Below are positions 5,814 to 14,092 of a DNA stretch of 64,000 bases, piece after piece. The stretch comes from Guillardia theta CCMP2712. Taxonomy: Eukaryota > Protista > Cryptophyta. The stretch is taken from contig NW_005434671.1 in assembly GCF_000315625.1 (NCBI RefSeq), forward strand, positions 124,001 to 188,000. The letters are read 5' to 3'. A program made the translations under genes and the position numbers. The first letter of the stretch is position 1. The number at the start of each line of letters is the position of its first letter. The notes under the pieces are model-generated. The model did not search any database, was not told where the DNA came from, and saw only the letters and a list, made by a program, of their open reading frames with translations.

Positions 5814-6805
5814 GTTTACTGGGACAGGCGTGAACGATGAAATGGGAGAATCTGCACGTGCTGGGGTGTATCGAGTGAGGCAAATTCAACACTGTCGCAA
5901 CTGCTTTCACAGGATCAAAACTTTCTCATCTCACTGATTCACATGCGAGCTCAGCCTAAAAATCATTTCAAACTCCACTTCCTCTCTCTTGTTCTGTCTC
6001 GTTGGTAGACCTCCCTATCCTTGGTCTGCCAACTCTTAAGCTCTCACTGACTTTCTGCGGGTTCCCTCGCCCATCATTGACTTTAACCAAGGCCTGGATG
6101 TAACAGACCAGGCCGCCGGCTCTGCGTAAACTTGGTAGGTGGGGTGGGGACCCACCCTCGGCCTCGTCGCTGTCGTACGGTACAGAAGTGAAACCGTCGA
6201 GGCCCATTCATCCCAAGGGGTAGTCTGAGAGCAGCCTCGGCGTTCCACCACCTACCGGTCACCGGGTACTGGAATCTGTTACTCAAAGTTAAGTTAAAAA
6301 TCAGTACGAGGACAATCAGGAGAGTCGAGGAGGCTTGACCCTGACACTGTCGCACAGGCCAAACGGCGAGAAGAGAAAAGACAGCGAGAACCAAACCCAA
6401 TCCTGCCAGTACTGGAATTATTCTGTAGGGCCGGTCCTATCAGAGTCCACGCTCAGGCTGCACCTAAAACCAGGTCCTGCCGGGGACTGGCAGAGTCCAC
6501 TGAAGGGCCCCGGCAGTGGGTCAGAGGGTGGGTGGCCCGGGCCCGACCGCTAGTGTGATGCCACGGTGCTGCTGCACTTTCTGAGGGCCTGTGCCGCTAG
6601 CGAAGTGCCGCAGTGCGGCCATACTATGATAAGACGGTGGCCCATGATGGTCTACAGCCTGGCAGGCTTGACCCGGGGGCAACCGTAAAACACCGCGACA
6701 GGCCGCGGCGGCGGGGCTTCCGAGCCTTCAGTGAAATGAGCCTTGATCGGACGGTCCCCGGCCCCCCGGCGGCCGGCCCGGCCGCGTGCGGCCCCGGCGG
6801 GTCTC

Positions 6806-7200
6806 TGACGGATCACATGGATCTTATATAGAGCCCAGACTTGCCGAGCCCAAAAACTGAGAAATTGTAACTGTTCTGGAACGGTACGGTTCTCCATTCC
6901 GACTATTCGATGGAATGACCAGAGGAAGCATCCTCGGGGCGGACAATACCCCTGGTTATCTGTATATAAGCATGGGGTCTTGTCTTCCTCTCTCTCTGTC
7001 TCTTTCCCTCTCTTCTCCCTCTTTCTTTCTCCTCATTCTCTCTCTCTTCTCTTTTCCTTTCTCACTATCTCTTAATCTTTTTCTTTCTCCTATCCTTTCA
7101 GTCTCTGTTGTCTTCCTATCCTTGCTCTACTTATAAATACTCTTATCTCTGAAGTCAATTACCTATCTGCTCTAACTTCGCTACTGCATACAATCCATCG
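6806..7200 (+). repeat. 5' LTR (TG...CG)
   Basis: Matches 12790-13184 by eye at all but the first and last base; TATA-like TATATAAG at 6963; long CT-rich tract; imperfect terminal IR TGACGGAT/ATCCATC(A). Confidence 0.95.
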
Positions 7201-7213
7201 GTTATGATAGCCT
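7200..7213 (+). promoter_or_regulatory. Primer-binding site, half-tRNA-iMet type
   Basis: GGTTATGA(TA)GCC resembles the complement of the initiator tRNA anticodon arm used by copia/Ty5; contains the gag ATG at 7204. Confidence 0.65.
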
Positions 7214-10200
7214 CGTTCTCTACTACGCCAGGGCTGACTTCTTTCTCCAATACAGCCACACTCAGTCTTGGAATTCTTGTGCTTTGGTTCGCTTACTGCA
7301 CTTTTCGACTCATCTGTTCAATCTACACAACATTGTCTGACTGGAAAGGCCGAATCTACAACAATGTATGCTTTCCATCACTACTGAACCTGTTCAACAG
7401 AAACAAACTGGCAGACCTGACAACCGACGCACAGGCTAATCTTCAATACGCCAGCACACCGCATGTGCATCGATATGTCACCAAATCCCCCAATGTTGCT
7501 CCTAACATTCTGTTTGCACATGATACCCCAACTACTTCTGGGGCAACCAAATATTCTTCTAAGGTTCTTCGACGAACAACACCAGTTTATCGTCCGAACC
7601 CAATGAGTGTGACAACTGTGAAATCTCCCACCAGTACCCCGGCACAAGTTACGATTATTTCCTCGCCATCCGGCATAGAGTTTCCACCGCTTCCACGTAG
7701 CACTGACTATGACGCACTGGACACTTGGAAACAAGGGGTAGAGAGAATCTTCCGACGTCATTCCATCCCAATGTCCGACTGGCTTCCCATCCTAGCGGAC
7801 GATCCTCGCACTGATGAACGACTGGTAAGTATCATTCGCAATGTGCAATTTGACGTAGGACCTGGAGCTTCACCCTCACAGTACTGGGAAGGTGTTATCT
7901 CTAGAGTTTTTCGTTGCACTAAATGCCCACGACCATGGGACCGGTTCTCAACACTACAGAAGAACCTTATTACGCTGAAACAGAGCAGCTCTCTTGAGCT
8001 ATACCTACTTGAGTTTGAGAATCGCTGGCGAGAACTCGCAGTATGGGCATGTGACTTTAATCTAGAAGATGGACTACCAACCCAGGATAACTTGATTACT
8101 CTACTCATTCAAGGACTGGACTCGAGATGTAGTTCAGCAGTGGCTGGCAGAACTGATGAGATTGTGAATGCCGAGACACTCACTGATGCAATGGATTTGA
8201 TTGCAGACATCTGTTCTGAATACAAGGTGGCTGGACTTGATGAGGAATCGTTCGCTCGGCTGAATAATCGTACCAAACGGACATACGGTCAGGGACTCAG
8301 GAGTGACAACATGCTTCGGGTCGAGACACCAACCGTAAGAACACCCAGCTGCATTCCCCAATCTCTCGCTTGTTACTCACGGCTCACAAAACTGTCTGCA
8401 GATACTCGAAGACTAAGTCACCACTCGCCTCAAGGGTCATGGAAGTCGAGGATCGGAATACTTCCTCTGCCACCGAACTACAGGAAACTACGTTCGCAGT
8501 ATTTTCCCCTACAAAATTTATCGTACCATCGTGCTAATAATACAACGACCCTAGCGTCTTCACGACTCGGATTGAAATCATGGCGAATTACTCAGAGGAA
8601 CTCGATTGCCCTGAAAACTACTGTCAGCCCCCTGAAAGACAAGGAGCATCATCCTCTTTCAAGGCAGACGGCTACACCTCTCGCTCCAACCACTGGGCAA
8701 CTTCCAGCGGAGACTGTGATGAACCTGGCAGAACACTATGTCAGTCCACCCAGTTCTTCAGATGAAACCCCTGAGCAACCAGGAATTCAAATTGTGTTGG
8801 ATACGGGAGCCTCCGATCATTTCTTCAACTCTGACATTCTTAATTTCATCACTGAACTTAATTCTGAACCTCTGGAGTTGCAAGTGAATACCATTCTTGG
8901 CAGTACACAAAACCAGACTGTGCTCCCAACTCGTAGACAGAGAGCTGACATATTCTCTGTCACAGCAAGGCTTCCTTTTCTTCCTGAGTCAGATCTATCA
9001 GGATTTTTCTCGCCAGACTTCATGGTGAATCTACTTTCAGCCGCCCGACTAGTGGAAAGTGGTTACTTTGTTATTCTCTGTAAAAACCATTCGGTCGTGT
9101 GCTGTCCTATAGAAAGTACCGGATCAGATGGCTCTATCCTGGTAATTCCTCTTCTCCGTTCTGGCAATACCTGGATCTTCAACTCTAGTCACCAGACAAG
9201 GTACTTAATTCGTACATCCTTACTGAACAAATTCTTGCTGTGGCTGTTGAATCCACATACCTCAGAAGTGCCAGACATCGCAGAGGCAGCCTATGTGGAC
9301 TCAAATAAGAATAAGAATGTGACAGATCAATTGTATCCTCCATTTGCACAGTTCTGCTGCAGCACGCCTACGCTCAACAGAGAATACAAGGAAACTGAAA
9401 GATCTGCGACCAGCTCAGCTCCTGAGGGATTGCCTACTGCTTCCCCTGCCGTACCGATTGGCAACACTGACACAGCTAGTAACCATCACAGTACTGAACA
9501 ATCTCTGTCTCAAAAGGCACAGTTTCTCCAGAAGTTACATCTTAAACTGGGACATGCGAACATGGTTGCCCTCACCAAACTACACTACAGCACGGCTGAA
9601 GTTCCGGAGGTACCGCGGAAGTATCTCTGCCTGGATGAAAAATGCCTGTGCTGCCTTAGAATGAAGAGCAAACAGATCCTGGCAAGTAAGCACAACGGTG
9701 AAATAACCAAATTGTGTGCGACACAGAGAAACTTTCAACCACTAGAGAAGTTACACGCTGATCTAGCAGGTCCACTGAACATTCGGACTCACAAAGGAGC
9801 AAGGCACTTTCTCGTAATCACTGACCAGGCGACACGCTTCCGATGGGTTCTACTAGTTCCCAAAAAGGATGATGTACCTGAACTCCTTCAAAGCTTCTTT
9901 CGAGACCTGCTTGCAGAATTTGGCACTAACGTAAAAATACTGATCCTACAAACCGACTGTGGCAGCGAATTTAAGAATCAGAAACTCAACACCATTCTGC
10001 AAAATGCTGGAATCAGACCTGAATACTCTTGTCCTTACACTCCAAGTCAGAATGGTATTGCAGAATCTTCGGTCAAGAGAATCAAAGAGATCACTCGAGC
10101 ATTCATGGACACATCCAATTTACCCCAGAGCCTCTGGGGGTTTGCAGCGGTACACGCTGCACGTGTTGCAAATCTCATTCCTCATCGGTTACTAAACTAT

Positions 10201-11817
10201 CAGACTCCGTTTCAATTACTGTACGGATATTACCCATCACTCAACAAGCTTCCGGTGTTCGGATGCTATGCTTGTGTTCACAGGAAAAATAACAAAGGTT
10301 CACTGGTTGGAAGCACTGTTGAAGGAATCTATCTCGGAGATGCTGATCCACTGTTTAATACAAAGGGTTATCTCGTGTATGGACCAAAGTCAAAACGATT
10401 CTTCATCTCCACGTCTGTGGCGTTTGATGAAAGCTTATACCCTTGCAGGCCAAAGAGCTCACGAAGGTTGACAGATCTCAAGGACATAAGTACACTACTT
10501 ACCGACAATGAACTTGAGTACCCTGACTACTCCAGCTCTGATCTATCAGAACACCACCAAGTCATGAGCTGTGAGCAACAATCTGGCAGTACTGATTGCT
10601 GTACAGATCTGATGAATCACGAATCTCCGAAATCTGTTCCCGGCAATGTGCATAAAGCAAAAGATACAGAACCACTGATCAAACAACGACATAGTTTGAA
10701 AACTCTGAGCAGAAAACAACTGGTCAATGCACTTGTCAGAAATAAGGTTCAACTCGAATTACCATCATACTTCTATCCGGATGAGACACCTGGAACATGG
10801 ACAGTCATGAGCCACAGAAGGGAACAAAGGAATAAGCAGACCTACCTTCTCACCAAAGTAGTGGACTGTCCTGTACCAGATGACATTGGAAAGATAATTC
10901 CACTGAAAACTGACAATTCTGAGTTCTCCTTACAGAAAGTGTTGGACCTTCAATTTAACTTTCCTCAGTATCTAGATGACATACTCTCTGTACAGCAGGG
11001 GCGTACAAGTCCAGAAGAATCAGTGAACCCCACATCTACTGCCTACTTCACCTCATCAACTCTCACTTACTGGCAGCGGATCAAGGAACCCAAAAGCATA
11101 AAGGAAGCATACGAAAGCGAACATAGAGACAAATGGATGAAAGCACTCCAAGATGAAATGACTAGCCTTGAACAAAAATTGGTGTATACTACTGAGTCAC
11201 AGGTTCCTCCCGGAACAAAAACTATCCCTTGCAAACCAGTTTTCAAGGTAAAAACAAATTCAGATGGAACCCTAGACAAATTCAAGGCTCGTATAGTAGC
11301 GTTGGGATATCGTCAAGTGAAGGGTATCGACTATGAAGAGACATTTGCACCATTTGTAGACCTGAGCACTATTCGATTGCTATTTGCATTGGCCGTAGAA
11401 TACACCTATCACATTCACCATGTCGACGTAAAAACTGCCTTCCTAAATGCAAACATAGACAAGGAAATTTATACCAGACCTCCCAAGGACTTATTGAAGT
11501 ACTTACGTGCATGGCTCACAGGAAGTGTCCCAATAGACCTACCAGAGGACGACAGAGTATTCTGGAAACTGCAGCGAGCACTATATGGTACCAAACAAGC
11601 CCCTAACTTGTGGAGTGTAACCTTACGAAATTACTTGTTACAATTAGGATTTCGTGACGTCGGATTTGAAAAATCTGTATACATTCGCAGAAAACCAGAT
11701 GGGGGTGTTCTAATCGTACTTGTCTGGGTGGATGATGTGTTACTGTTTGGAGACACCTTGGAACCTATCAATGAATTCAAGACAGAATTGAATAACAGGG
11801 TTCCCAATCACCGATAA
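7204..11817 (+). CDS. Copia gag-pol polyprotein (gag, aspartic protease, integrase, RT N-terminal part)
   Basis: VLDTGASDHF protease; HLKLGH...CLCC zinc finger; HADLAGP / TDCGSEF / QNGIAE DDE triad; TKGY; KARIVALG, DVKTAFLN, LYGTKQAP and WVDD RT motifs. Confidence 0.95.
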   Translation: MIASFSTTPGLTSFSNTATLSLGILVLWFAYCTFRLICSIYTTLSDWKGRIYNNVCFPSLLNLFNRNKLADLTTDAQANLQYASTPHVHRYVTKSPNVAPNILFAHDTPTTSGATKYSSKVLRRTTPVYRPNPMSVTTVKSPTSTPAQVTIISSPSGIEFPPLPRSTDYDALDTWKQGVERIFRRHSIPMSDWLPILADDPRTDERLVSIIRNVQFDVGPGASPSQYWEGVISRVFRCTKCPRPWDRFSTLQKNLITLKQSSSLELYLLEFENRWRELAVWACDFNLEDGLPTQDNLITLLIQGLDSRCSSAVAGRTDEIVNAETLTDAMDLIADICSEYKVAGLDEESFARLNNRTKRTYGQGLRSDNMLRVETPTVRTPSCIPQSLACYSRLTKLSADTRRLSHHSPQGSWKSRIGILPLPPNYRKLRSQYFPLQNLSYHRANNTTTLASSRLGLKSWRITQRNSIALKTTVSPLKDKEHHPLSRQTATPLAPTTGQLPAETVMNLAEHYVSPPSSSDETPEQPGIQIVLDTGASDHFFNSDILNFITELNSEPLELQVNTILGSTQNQTVLPTRRQRADIFSVTARLPFLPESDLSGFFSPDFMVNLLSAARLVESGYFVILCKNHSVVCCPIESTGSDGSILVIPLLRSGNTWIFNSSHQTRYLIRTSLLNKFLLWLLNPHTSEVPDIAEAAYVDSNKNKNVTDQLYPPFAQFCCSTPTLNREYKETERSATSSAPEGLPTASPAVPIGNTDTASNHHSTEQSLSQKAQFLQKLHLKLGHANMVALTKLHYSTAEVPEVPRKYLCLDEKCLCCLRMKSKQILASKHNGEITKLCATQRNFQPLEKLHADLAGPLNIRTHKGARHFLVITDQATRFRWVLLVPKKDDVPELLQSFFRDLLAEFGTNVKILILQTDCGSEFKNQKLNTILQNAGIRPEYSCPYTPSQNGIAESSVKRIKEITRAFMDTSNLPQSLWGFAAVHAARVANLIPHRLLNYQTPFQLLYGYYPSLNKLPVFGCYACVHRKNNKGSLVGSTVEGIYLGDADPLFNTKGYLVYGPKSKRFFISTSVAFDESLYPCRPKSSRRLTDLKDISTLLTDNELEYPDYSSSDLSEHHQVMSCEQQSGSTDCCTDLMNHESPKSVPGNVHKAKDTEPLIKQRHSLKTLSRKQLVNALVRNKVQLELPSYFYPDETPGTWTVMSHRREQRNKQTYLLTKVVDCPVPDDIGKIIPLKTDNSEFSLQKVLDLQFNFPQYLDDILSVQQGRTSPEESVNPTSTAYFTSSTLTYWQRIKEPKSIKEAYESEHRDKWMKALQDEMTSLEQKLVYTTESQVPPGTKTIPCKPVFKVKTNSDGTLDKFKARIVALGYRQVKGIDYEETFAPFVDLSTIRLLFALAVEYTYHIHHVDVKTAFLNANIDKEIYTRPPKDLLKYLRAWLTGSVPIDLPEDDRVFWKLQRALYGTKQAPNLWSVTLRNYLLQLGFRDVGFEKSVYIRRKPDGGVLIVLVWVDDVLLFGDTLEPINEFKTELNNRVPNHR

Positions 11818-12760
11818 GGGAGAAGTGGAATACTTCTTAGGGGTAGAGATCAAACGAGATCTTGAAACAGGAAGCATCACACTCTCTCAAGAAAAATTCA
11901 TCAACGAAATATTGACAGAATTCGAGATAGATGAGAAAATGAAAGCCTGGACTCCTGGAACTACAACCAAACAAAAACTTAGTGATGATGGAGATTACCT
12001 TCACAAAGGAGACCAGACGAGATATCAACAACTGATAGGCAAACTCAATTATCTCTCGGTGTTTACAAGACCTGACTTGGCCTACACAATCTCAAGACTC
12101 TCACAACATCTGAGAGCACCCACTGTAACAAATTGGAAGGAAGCTATGAGAGTTCTTCATTATCTAAATCAGACAAAAAATATGGGAATAATTTTCAAAC
12201 GGGCCGGAAGTCTACACTCACCATGTCCTGGATTAATTGCATACAGCGATAGCGATTTTGGAGGAGACTCCTCAGATCGTCGCTCAACCATTGGCTTACT
12301 TCTGCAATACAATGGTGCCCCGATAGTCTGGAAGGCTAAGAAACTCAAACTTGTCACCCTTAGTACAGCCGAATCAGAGTATTGTGCAGGCGCAAAGGCT
12401 GGAGTAGAAATCATCTACATACGACAAATATTAGAGGACCTGGGTCTAGAGTGTATCAATCCAACTCCATTGTACATTGACAATCAGGCTGCAATCTGCA
12501 TTGCAAAGAATCCAGGAAAAAAGAGTTTGGCTAAACACATTGACATCAAGAGGTTTTTCCTAAGACAACTTGTGGAAGAGAATACCGTTAACGTACAATA
12601 TGTACAGACCTCGAAGATGTTGGCTGACCTCATGACAAAATCACTTGGACGCTATCAACACATGAATCTGACTAAGCAGGTATTGGGCCAATTTGAGTCT
12701 TTCCAACATCCATCCCTTGATCCAATCTCAGAACTAAAACCTACAGACTCACCTGACTAG
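11801..12760 (+). CDS. Copia pol C-terminal part (RT thumb and RNase H), separated by a +1 frameshift
   Basis: FPITDKGEVEYFLGVEI, TRPDL, YSDSDF, STAESEY, IDNQAA, KHIDIK, ADLMTK motifs. Confidence 0.93.
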   Translation, partial: FPITDKGEVEYFLGVEIKRDLETGSITLSQEKFINEILTEFEIDEKMKAWTPGTTTKQKLSDDGDYLHKGDQTRYQQLIGKLNYLSVFTRPDLAYTISRLSQHLRAPTVTNWKEAMRVLHYLNQTKNMGIIFKRAGSLHSPCPGLIAYSDSDFGGDSSDRRSTIGLLLQYNGAPIVWKAKKLKLVTLSTAESEYCAGAKAGVEIIYIRQILEDLGLECINPTPLYIDNQAAICIAKNPGKKSLAKHIDIKRFFLRQLVEENTVNVQYVQTSKMLADLMTKSLGRYQHMNLTKQVLGQFESFQHPSLDPISELKPTDSPD

Positions 12761-12782
12761 GGACTCTACCATGTCTGGTCTC

Positions 12783-12789
12783 AGGGGGG
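12783..12789 (+). promoter_or_regulatory. Polypurine tract
   Basis: AGGGGGG immediately 5' of the 3' LTR. Confidence 0.8.
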
Positions 12790-13184
12790 CGACGGATCAC
12801 ATGGATCTTATATAGAGCCCAGACTTGCCGAGCCCAAAAACTGAGAAATTGTAACTGTTCTGGAACGGTACGGTTCTCCATTCCGACTATTCGATGGAAT
12901 GACCAGAGGAAGCATCCTCGGGGCGGACAATACCCCTGGTTATCTGTATATAAGCATGGGGTCTTGTCTTCCTCTCTCTCTGTCTCTTTCCCTCTCTTCT
13001 CCCTCTTTCTTTCTCCTCATTCTCTCTCTCTTCTCTTTTCCTTTCTCACTATCTCTTAATCTTTTTCTTTCTCCTATCCTTTCAGTCTCTGTTGTCTTCC
13101 TATCCTTGCTCTACTTATAAATACTCTTATCTCTGAAGTCAATTACCTATCTGCTCTAACTTCGCTACTGCATACAATCCATCA
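12790..13184 (+). repeat. 3' LTR (CG...CA)
   Basis: Copy of 6806-7200 at offset 5984, followed by TSD GTCTC. Confidence 0.95.
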
Positions 13185-14092
13185 GTCTCAGTCTTACTCC
13201 CTGAGGCTCCGGCGGTCGAAGTGCACTGTGAGACACTGTCATCTTGCGAGGCCGAGCCGCGCCCGCTGAGGTTCTCGTCCGATCACTGGCCCTTCGACGG
13301 TGAGCCGAGGGCTGCTCTGTGAGGCTTTCAGTGTGACTCAAAGTTAAGTTAAAAATCAGTACGAAGTAGTGCCACGGTGATTTGAGTACTACTGTGGGAC
13401 CGTGTAAAAAATTGCGACTAATAAAAATAGAACGGCCGCTCAACGGTTCTTGTAGACTCTCTGAGGCAGGGCTCTAAAGAGTTCGGCATTACTACAGGCC
13501 GAGTAAACAACTGTGCCAGGCGGACCCTGCTCAGTGCATGGAGGGAAATGGGCAGTGGGGGTGGGGGTGGGGTGAGGGGTCCGTTGGGCTTCTCGGAGGT
13601 GCCGACGGTGTGGCCCCCGGCAGGGGTAGGGTGGTTAATGTATGGAACTTGGGGTCCACTGTGCTTCTAACCTGGGGGTACTCCGTCAGTATGGCGAGGT
13701 CGGTGGCGTCCCCTTGCAGTTGAAGGGGAAGAGAAGAGAGGGTGAGAAGGGAGGTGAGAGAAGAGGGAGGAAAGGAGAGACAGAACACGATTGCATGGAT
13801 CGCTGACATTGGTTCCCTGTGCTGCATACGGCGACGCGTTCAAAGGGTACAAGAATGAAACCTGAAAAGGTCAACTGCCCAGTATTCCATCCAATGTCTC
13901 TTGGGATAAACAGCCTGTGAGAACAACGAAATGAGCTGGAGTGAATGGTGACACGATCGAACTCTGAGGAGATCAATATTGGATTGGACGCACTTTCAAA
14001 GCCAGAATGAAATCAACGCTCATATGATCAAGTTGTTTCGAGTTCGTGCATCAGTGTTGTAATCCAGGGATAATCAGGGTCATCTCATCAAC

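Follow-up and report, generated by a model that had tools for sequence, protein, structure and literature searches.

Long terminal repeat pairs of a Ty1/copia retrotransposon in Guillardia theta differ at their terminal bases, suggesting non-templated addition of A to the cDNA ends

The window analyzed here is a stretch of 64,000 nt of the Guillardia theta genome (contig NW_005434671.1, 124,001-188,000), and coordinates given without a contig label are positions within this window. It contains one long terminal repeat (LTR) element, a Ty1/copia retrotransposon with a 393-bp repeat unit GACGG...CCATC and a target-site duplication GTCTC. The assignment to Ty1/copia follows from two direct LTRs with a 5-bp target duplication, a tRNA primer-binding site (PBS) inside the 5' LTR, a polypurine tract before the 3' LTR, and a polyprotein in which the integrase is located upstream of a copia-type reverse transcriptase (RT). 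The order of domains in the long open reading frame (ORF) is rve (residues 845-947), SH3_retrovirus (1007-1079), and RVT_2 (1333-1531). In one respect, however, the element departs from its group. In Ty1/copia elements both LTRs are expected to read TG...CA, with the integrase signal templated by the inner junctions, while here the inner junctions read C/GACGG and CCATC/GG in every full-length copy. This departure is one feature of the replication scheme, and the protein family is still Ty1/copia.

The outer left end of the window copy reads GTCTC/T/GACGG (6801-6811) and the outer right end reads CCATC/A/GTCTC (13179-13189). The duplication abuts the outer T and A exactly (6801-6806 and 13184-13189), just as the original prediction, made from the letters of the window, had stated. 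At the inner junctions we observed CCATC/G/GTTATGATAGCC on the right (7195-7212), with GGTTATGATAGCCTCG as the sequence following the 5' LTR, and AGGGGGG/C/GACGG on the left (12783-12795). When the two LTRs were aligned over 395 positions, they differed only at position 1 (T/C) and at position 395 (G/A), and the 393 positions between were identical; both the sequence reading and the alignment agree with the junction letters and the terminal differences noted originally. The description of the inner termini as CG was right with respect to the letters, but the boundaries can be stated more clearly: the G at 7200 already belongs to the PBS, as its first base, and the C at 12790 adjoins the polypurine run. 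Therefore, the repeat unit is 393 bp long, and the integrated copy has one extra T:A pair outside each end.

Other ways to place the boundaries were rejected. An LTR ending with ...CCA and followed by a TC spacer would lack a corresponding TG at the left side, and every copy contains TCA. For a 7-bp target duplication that would include the T and the A, the flanking bases mismatch. An origin of the T and the A from the target is at odds with the location of both bases between the duplication and the repeat unit. As for 3' processing of the retroviral type, the region of the inner right junction contains no CA that could yield the observed end, and TG is absent from the inner left junction. The features of the element are listed in Table 1.

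Table 1. Features of the Ty1/copia element, with positions within the 64,000-nt window
Feature	Position	Strand	Remarks
Left target-site duplication GTCTC	6801..6805	+	Same 5 bases at 13185-13189
Outer T, left end	6806..6806	+	Proposed partner of the A added to the minus-strand 3' end; C at the inner counterpart 12790
5' LTR repeat unit, 393 bp (GACGG...CCATC)	6807..7199	+	Identical to 12791-13183
Primer-binding site (PBS) GGTTATGA-TA-GCCTCG	7200..7215	+	Complement of initiator tRNA-Met bases 26-39, with a 2-base TA inside
Long ORF, 1537 amino acids (aa)	7204..11817	+	Integrase core, SH3-like domain, first three quarters of a copia-type RT; stop 11815-11817
Second ORF, 311 aa, other frame	11825..12760	+	Continuation of the polyprotein: end of RT plus RNase H region
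Polypurine run AGGGGGG, then C at the inner left junction	12783..12790	+	CTCAGGGGGGC/GACGG identical in four copies and two environmental contigs
3' LTR repeat unit, 393 bp	12791..13183	+	Alignment with the 5' LTR
Outer A, right end (A of the CA-3' end)	13184..13184	+	Without counterpart at the inner junction, where the PBS directly follows CCATC
Right target-site duplication GTCTC	13185..13189	+	Matches 6801-6805

We searched the genome (87.1 Mb, 669 contigs) for other copies of the same family, designated family A. Two more full-length copies were found, on C97 (target duplication AACAT, 395-bp LTRs) and on C46 (target duplication CTGGC, 404-bp LTRs, 94% identical to the window LTR). Each of the three copies has its own perfect 5-bp duplication directly against the T and the A, and in 3/3 the members of the LTR pair differ at the first and the last base alone (T/C and G/A). 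The absence of internal differences within the pairs indicates that these insertions are recent. All three have the arrangement TG/CG/CG/CA that had been predicted for full-length copies; neither TG...CA on both LTRs nor CG at the outer ends was seen in any of them (0/3). Solo LTRs, which had been predicted to read TG...CA, did so on C18 and C140, where they are located between the duplications GATCT and GTCCG, respectively.

To count family A ends more broadly, near-perfect matches to the LTR end were taken for the left side and exact 15-base matches for the right side. On the left, T was present at 12/12 clearly outer ends, compared to C at 4/4 inner ends that follow CTCAGGGGGG (Fisher p = 5e-4). 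On the right, 9 of the 11 ends away from a PBS had A, while G was found at 5/5 PBS-adjacent ends and A at none of these (Fisher p = 0.005).

Two further LTR loci showed unusual ends. A copy of the LTR at C8:820526-820951 starts with C/GACGG without a polypurine run, and its flanks are mutually reverse-complementary (GTACGGTGA ... TCACCGTAC). At C67:122153-122184, a related 5' LTR end consists of CCATC, five extra bases CGATC, and then GGTTATGAGCC.

A second family, family B, is present in high copy number and is much smaller, ~1.5 kb with LTRs of ~330 bp (for example, C43:518578-520108 and C41:242646-244168). The termini are TGATGGAA...TTCCGTCA, also written as TGATGGAACG...TTCCGTCA, and at least 140 LTR ends were found. 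The 5' LTR ends with ...GTC directly before GGTTATG, and the PBS, GGTTATG[A/G]GCC, is of the half-tRNA type as in family A; the polypurine tract is CGGGGGGAG. Having LTRs, a PBS, and a polypurine tract but no room for gag-pol, family B resembles a terminal-repeat retrotransposon in miniature (TRIM); the longest stop-free stretch in one copy was 123 codons. Families A and B have in common the terminal motif TGAYGGAW on both strands, the PBS type, and the G-run tract. These shared signals suggest that family B is probably mobilized by copia proteins of the family A lineage.

The bases at the ends of family B were tallied in the first 100 among the matches listed for each end, from totals of 142 and 153, and the counts for this family given in the text refer to these matches. 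Since an alignment of six copies was too diverged and rich in indels, the left boundary was set by locating the LTR start motif beside the polypurine run. Among the right ends, 33 adjoin a PBS and have A in 0/33, while the 67 outer ones divide into A 61, T 3, G 2, and C 1 (Fisher p = 1e-20). The left inner ends after CGGGGGGAG have G in 30/30 and T in 0/30, with four more ends following variant tracts, and the 66 left outer ends divide into T 63, C 2, and A 1 (Fisher p = 8e-22, outer versus inner). More than 100 ends of a second family, among the matches listed, also agree with the original prediction.

By pairing left and right flanks by position, we found ~25 perfect 5-bp duplications directly against the T and the A in family B, e.g., TATCA, CTCTC, AGAAC, CAGAC, CCTCT, CTGAC, CAGGC, AGGCC, AAGAC, CCGGG, GCCAA, GTGAC, and GGGTC. 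A third family showed the same pattern in the few copies identified, with a PBS copy on C7 and outer ends having A on C32 and C48.

The duplications of family B end with C in 16/25 cases without a mirror preference for G at the first position, and AAGAC occurs four times; this points to a target preference with an orientation or to insertions within a repeat. Single non-canonical extra bases were seen on C22 (T on the right, duplication TAAAC) and on C62 (C on the left, duplication AGATC).

The inner junctions were also found in environmental sequences. Two environmental contigs (ENA ERZ930071 and JGI 3300013132) are ~85% identical to the window element over 5.6-6.1 kb. GGGGGGC/GACGG is present in both, and CCATC/GGTTATGATAGCC is present in the ENA contig, the only one that reaches the 5' junction. 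From the conservation of the inner junctions in these relatives it follows that the short template is inherited stably and is not a flaw confined to dead copies. Both environmental contigs break off within an LTR, short of the outer ends. Searches for outer ends in other organisms gave no match: a scan with 14 bases over metagenome contigs gave 120 loci, none with real similarity, and two scans of viral contigs gave chance matches only. Junctions between two LTRs, whose relics would reveal the free ends of the cDNA, were also looked for, and none was found.

Host initiator-type tRNA-Met genes have the anticodon stem-loop CGAGG-CTCATAA-CCTCG. The PBS of the C97 and C46 copies, GGTTATGAGCCTCG, is an exact and uninterrupted 14-base complement of initiator tRNA bases 26-39. 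Judged by this complementarity, the PBS is of the half-tRNA type, which would imply a 39-base 5' tRNA fragment as the primer. The genome has 163 occurrences of the half-tRNA site motif compared to 9 for a reversed control. In the window copy, the pairing with the tRNA is 8+6 bases, split by a TA at 7208-7209. This TA-interrupted form is common to two genomic copies and one environmental contig (~85% identity). Given that this form is shared and that the LTRs of the window copy are identical, the interrupted PBS seems compatible with transposition.

In the textbook scheme, the LTRs of a new insertion are identical, and their TG...CA ends are copied from the RNA. Plus-strand synthesis starting after the polypurine primer fixes the left end of the complementary DNA (cDNA), and the first nucleotide joined to the tRNA primer fixes the right end. 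For the terminal base pair, this scheme is contradicted by more than 150 insertion ends, which belong to at least two families. On the strand that is joined by integrase, the added base is A at both ends. On the left, family A has C as the inner base and family B has G, and both have T as the outer base. The same outer T with two different inner bases argues that the outer base is not copied from the neighboring template base or from a leftover primer residue.

The pattern, its recurrence, and its inheritance were seen directly in the genomic DNA; the enzyme that would add the A, the stage at which it would act, and a need of integrase for the A are inferred. We consider it moderately probable that the cDNA of this young copia element gains an A at both 3' ends by non-templated addition of the kind known for RTs, and that this A completes the CA end used by integrase. 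The cDNA encoded by the RNA, GACGG...CCATC, would lack one base pair on either side. Once synthesis of the two strands is complete, each 3' end would gain one A specified by no template base. The most likely agent would be the RT of the element itself, either extending a blunt end or inserting A at the final position of the template; longer tails could be trimmed by integrase to the first CA. The added A would convert ...C-3' to ...CA-3'OH, which integrase would join to the target across a 5-bp stagger. Host gap repair would then fill in a T opposite each A, so that integrated copies would read TG...CA on the outside, while the inner junctions, the only ones transcribed, would never acquire the extra pair. 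The original prediction had proposed that the A is added de novo in each cycle. This proposal, with the A coming from non-templated addition or placed opposite a leftover primer residue, fits all the genomic data and is retained here as probable.

Some of these steps have experimental precedents. Integration by Ty1 integrase depends on a terminal CA and proceeds from blunt ends that are not processed (PMC8487063, PMC2939329), and RTs in general are able to add to a blunt end (PMC3035444). Three variants of the process would look alike in genome sequence, i.e., a +1 overhang, an A placed opposite the last deoxy- or ribonucleotide, and tails trimmed to CA.

The second of these variants can be stated as an alternative in its own right, in which a strand starts one base earlier or retains a primer ribonucleotide, A is placed opposite whatever residue comes last, and the mismatched 5' residue is removed in gap repair. 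The genomic outcome would be the same, so the integrated copies do not distinguish it from a +1 addition, and as the A would again be unspecified by the template, it is a sub-variant of the RT-addition reading. It suits family A in that the polypurine primer would end with the final G of AGGGGGG, where cleavage is more usual than after the C. On the other hand, A would have to be misincorporated nearly every time, against C at three ends and against G at the family B left end, and we regard this alternative as rather unlikely. A host activity, such as a repair polymerase or a terminal transferase acting on the cDNA or on an integration intermediate, could also supply the A:T pair. The sequence does not identify the enzyme, and the pattern is common to at least two families in one host, a point in favor of a host activity. 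However, these families share TGAYGGAW, the PBS type, and similar polypurine runs and are thus probably served by one element-encoded machinery, and the addition of a single base, nearly always A, at both ends is typical polymerase behavior at blunt ends. We consider a host source improbable.

The right-end A might instead be templated by the tRNA primer. The tRNA reads ...CTCATAACC-T-CG (...CAUAACC and then U), and this U sits at the right place for a 40-base primer, or a leftover rU, to specify A. Yet the terminal U of a 40-base primer would face C and would give ...CCATA instead of ...CCATCA. Any register in which the U is copied into plus-strand strong-stop DNA would put A at the inner junction of the progeny, where it was seen in 0/38 cases (0/5 in family A and 0/33 in family B, among the matches listed). 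The symmetric T on the left, where the template base is C or G, would stay unexplained as well, and this origin appears highly improbable. Finally, the differences could have arisen after insertion or by error, i.e., by two chance mutations, by CpG deamination of outer ends that were originally CG...CG, or by misassembly. All four junction bases of family A are indeed in a CpG context, and the differences are transitions; CpG deamination had been named originally as the main alternative. But the same two differences were found in the LTR pairs of three independent, otherwise identical copies, and the same split was observed in family B at more than 120 outer versus more than 60 inner ends among the matches listed. 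Such recurrence excludes misassembly as well as the pair of independent mutations, which the original prediction had already judged unlikely. Deamination is excluded because the changes affect the outer ends only, in every insertion, and because the left difference of family B, G versus T, is a transversion outside CpG. The inner bases are also present in the environmental relatives. We therefore assign practically no weight to post-insertion change or error.

Several observations weigh against the addition of A by the RT of the element. The evidence comes from integrated genomic copies, from which the replication intermediate is reconstructed, and a host polymerase could add the A. Bases other than T and A occupy about 5-9% of the outer ends of family B among the matches listed, and one copy, C30:377875-379442 (minus strand), has extra bases C on the left and T on the right within a perfect duplication CAGTC. 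The non-A extras may be later mutations, or they may be rare additions of other bases tolerated by integrase, in which case A would not be strictly needed. In family A, five further left ends that do not follow a polypurine tract read C or G with ambiguous flanks (C8, two on C75, C13:919227, and C129:77349), and the flanks of several truncated fragments are ambiguous as well. A canonical multi-copy family with a half-tRNA PBS was sought in the genome as an internal control, and none was found. Candidate canonical junctions CA/GGTTATGAGCC occur at four sites (C1:226348, C17:498613, C1:638145, and C2:677378), but the 15-16 bases before each of them occur once in the genome, and so there is no matching 3' LTR.

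The Guillardia element and Ty1, like canonical Ty1/copia elements in general, share the location of integrase before RT, the LTRs, the 5-bp duplication, the polypurine run before the 3' LTR, and the integrated TG...CA ends. In Ty1, however, all LTRs end with CA, the blunt cDNA is used unprocessed (PMC8487063), and CA is templated at the inner junctions, while the Guillardia inner junctions lack the A and the T. As in Drosophila copia and yeast Ty5, it is with the anticodon stem-loop of the initiator tRNA that the PBS can pair. In both copia and Ty5, CA is located directly before GGTTATG, whereas the Guillardia PBS follows ...ATC or ...GTC, with no A. Priming of Drosophila copia by a half-tRNA has been described (PMC5371799).

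Retroviruses and Ty3 are similar in that the inner junctions differ systematically from the integrated outer ends and the cDNA ends are remodeled before joining. Their templates encode bases beyond CA that are removed by integrase (PMC8487063, PMC1636480); the Guillardia template has one base too few, and the gain of a base is the mirror image. In fission yeast, most cDNA 3' ends of Tf1 receive non-templated nucleotides from its RT in vivo (PMC11042837). In Tf1, these are regarded as stray additions to ends in which the integrase signal is already encoded, while here the addition itself would complete the signal. The tomato element TARE1, with its 'TA' starts, also departs from the standard LTR end motif; its atypical start is in both LTRs, unlike the Guillardia elements, where the outer ends are canonical and the inner ones deviate (PMC3701649). 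Our literature search, whose coverage left out most subscription journals, found no report of LTR pairs differing systematically at the terminal base or of a templated end without A.

If the A is added by RT, non-templated addition would have a constructive role in the replication of a retroelement, and these families would offer a natural system for studying how integrase handles a one-base 3' overhang. A broader proposal, that this lineage together with its miniature dependants has moved a part of its integration signal out of its genome and depends in each cycle on template-independent A addition, seems to us evenly balanced between true and false. Under this proposal, what is treated elsewhere as carelessness of the polymerase would have become a step that replication requires and that is selected for, and the LTRs of a new insertion would never be fully identical. 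There are practical consequences too. LTR finders that require identical ends or TG/CA in both LTRs would set the boundary off by one base, misread the duplication, or discard the family, and dating by LTR divergence would include two differences that did not arise by mutation. The host alga can be cultured, and the effect can be tested in it directly.

With respect to coding capacity, the long ORF is 84% identical and the second ORF 94% identical to P0002, an intact 1864-aa relative from an environmental contig that is encoded in one open frame. The window copy itself does not have an intact autonomous coding capacity, as the polyprotein frame is broken near 11806-11817, with a one-base length difference at ~11806-11807 compared to both environmental relatives. 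The frame break could also stem from a wrong base call in the assembled sequence.

The polyprotein ORF opens at an ATG (7204-7206) inside the PBS in the window copy, in the C150 copy, and in one environmental relative. This ATG is the complement of the CAU anticodon of the initiator tRNA, and the first 18 polyprotein residues are identical between the window copy and the environmental relative. In the C97 and C46 copies, which lack the TA, the PBS ATG opens a frame of only 44 codons; therefore, its role as the true start codon is in doubt. The element is adjoined on its left by a very GC-rich, low-complexity stretch composed of CCGG/GGCC-type words (6741-6800).

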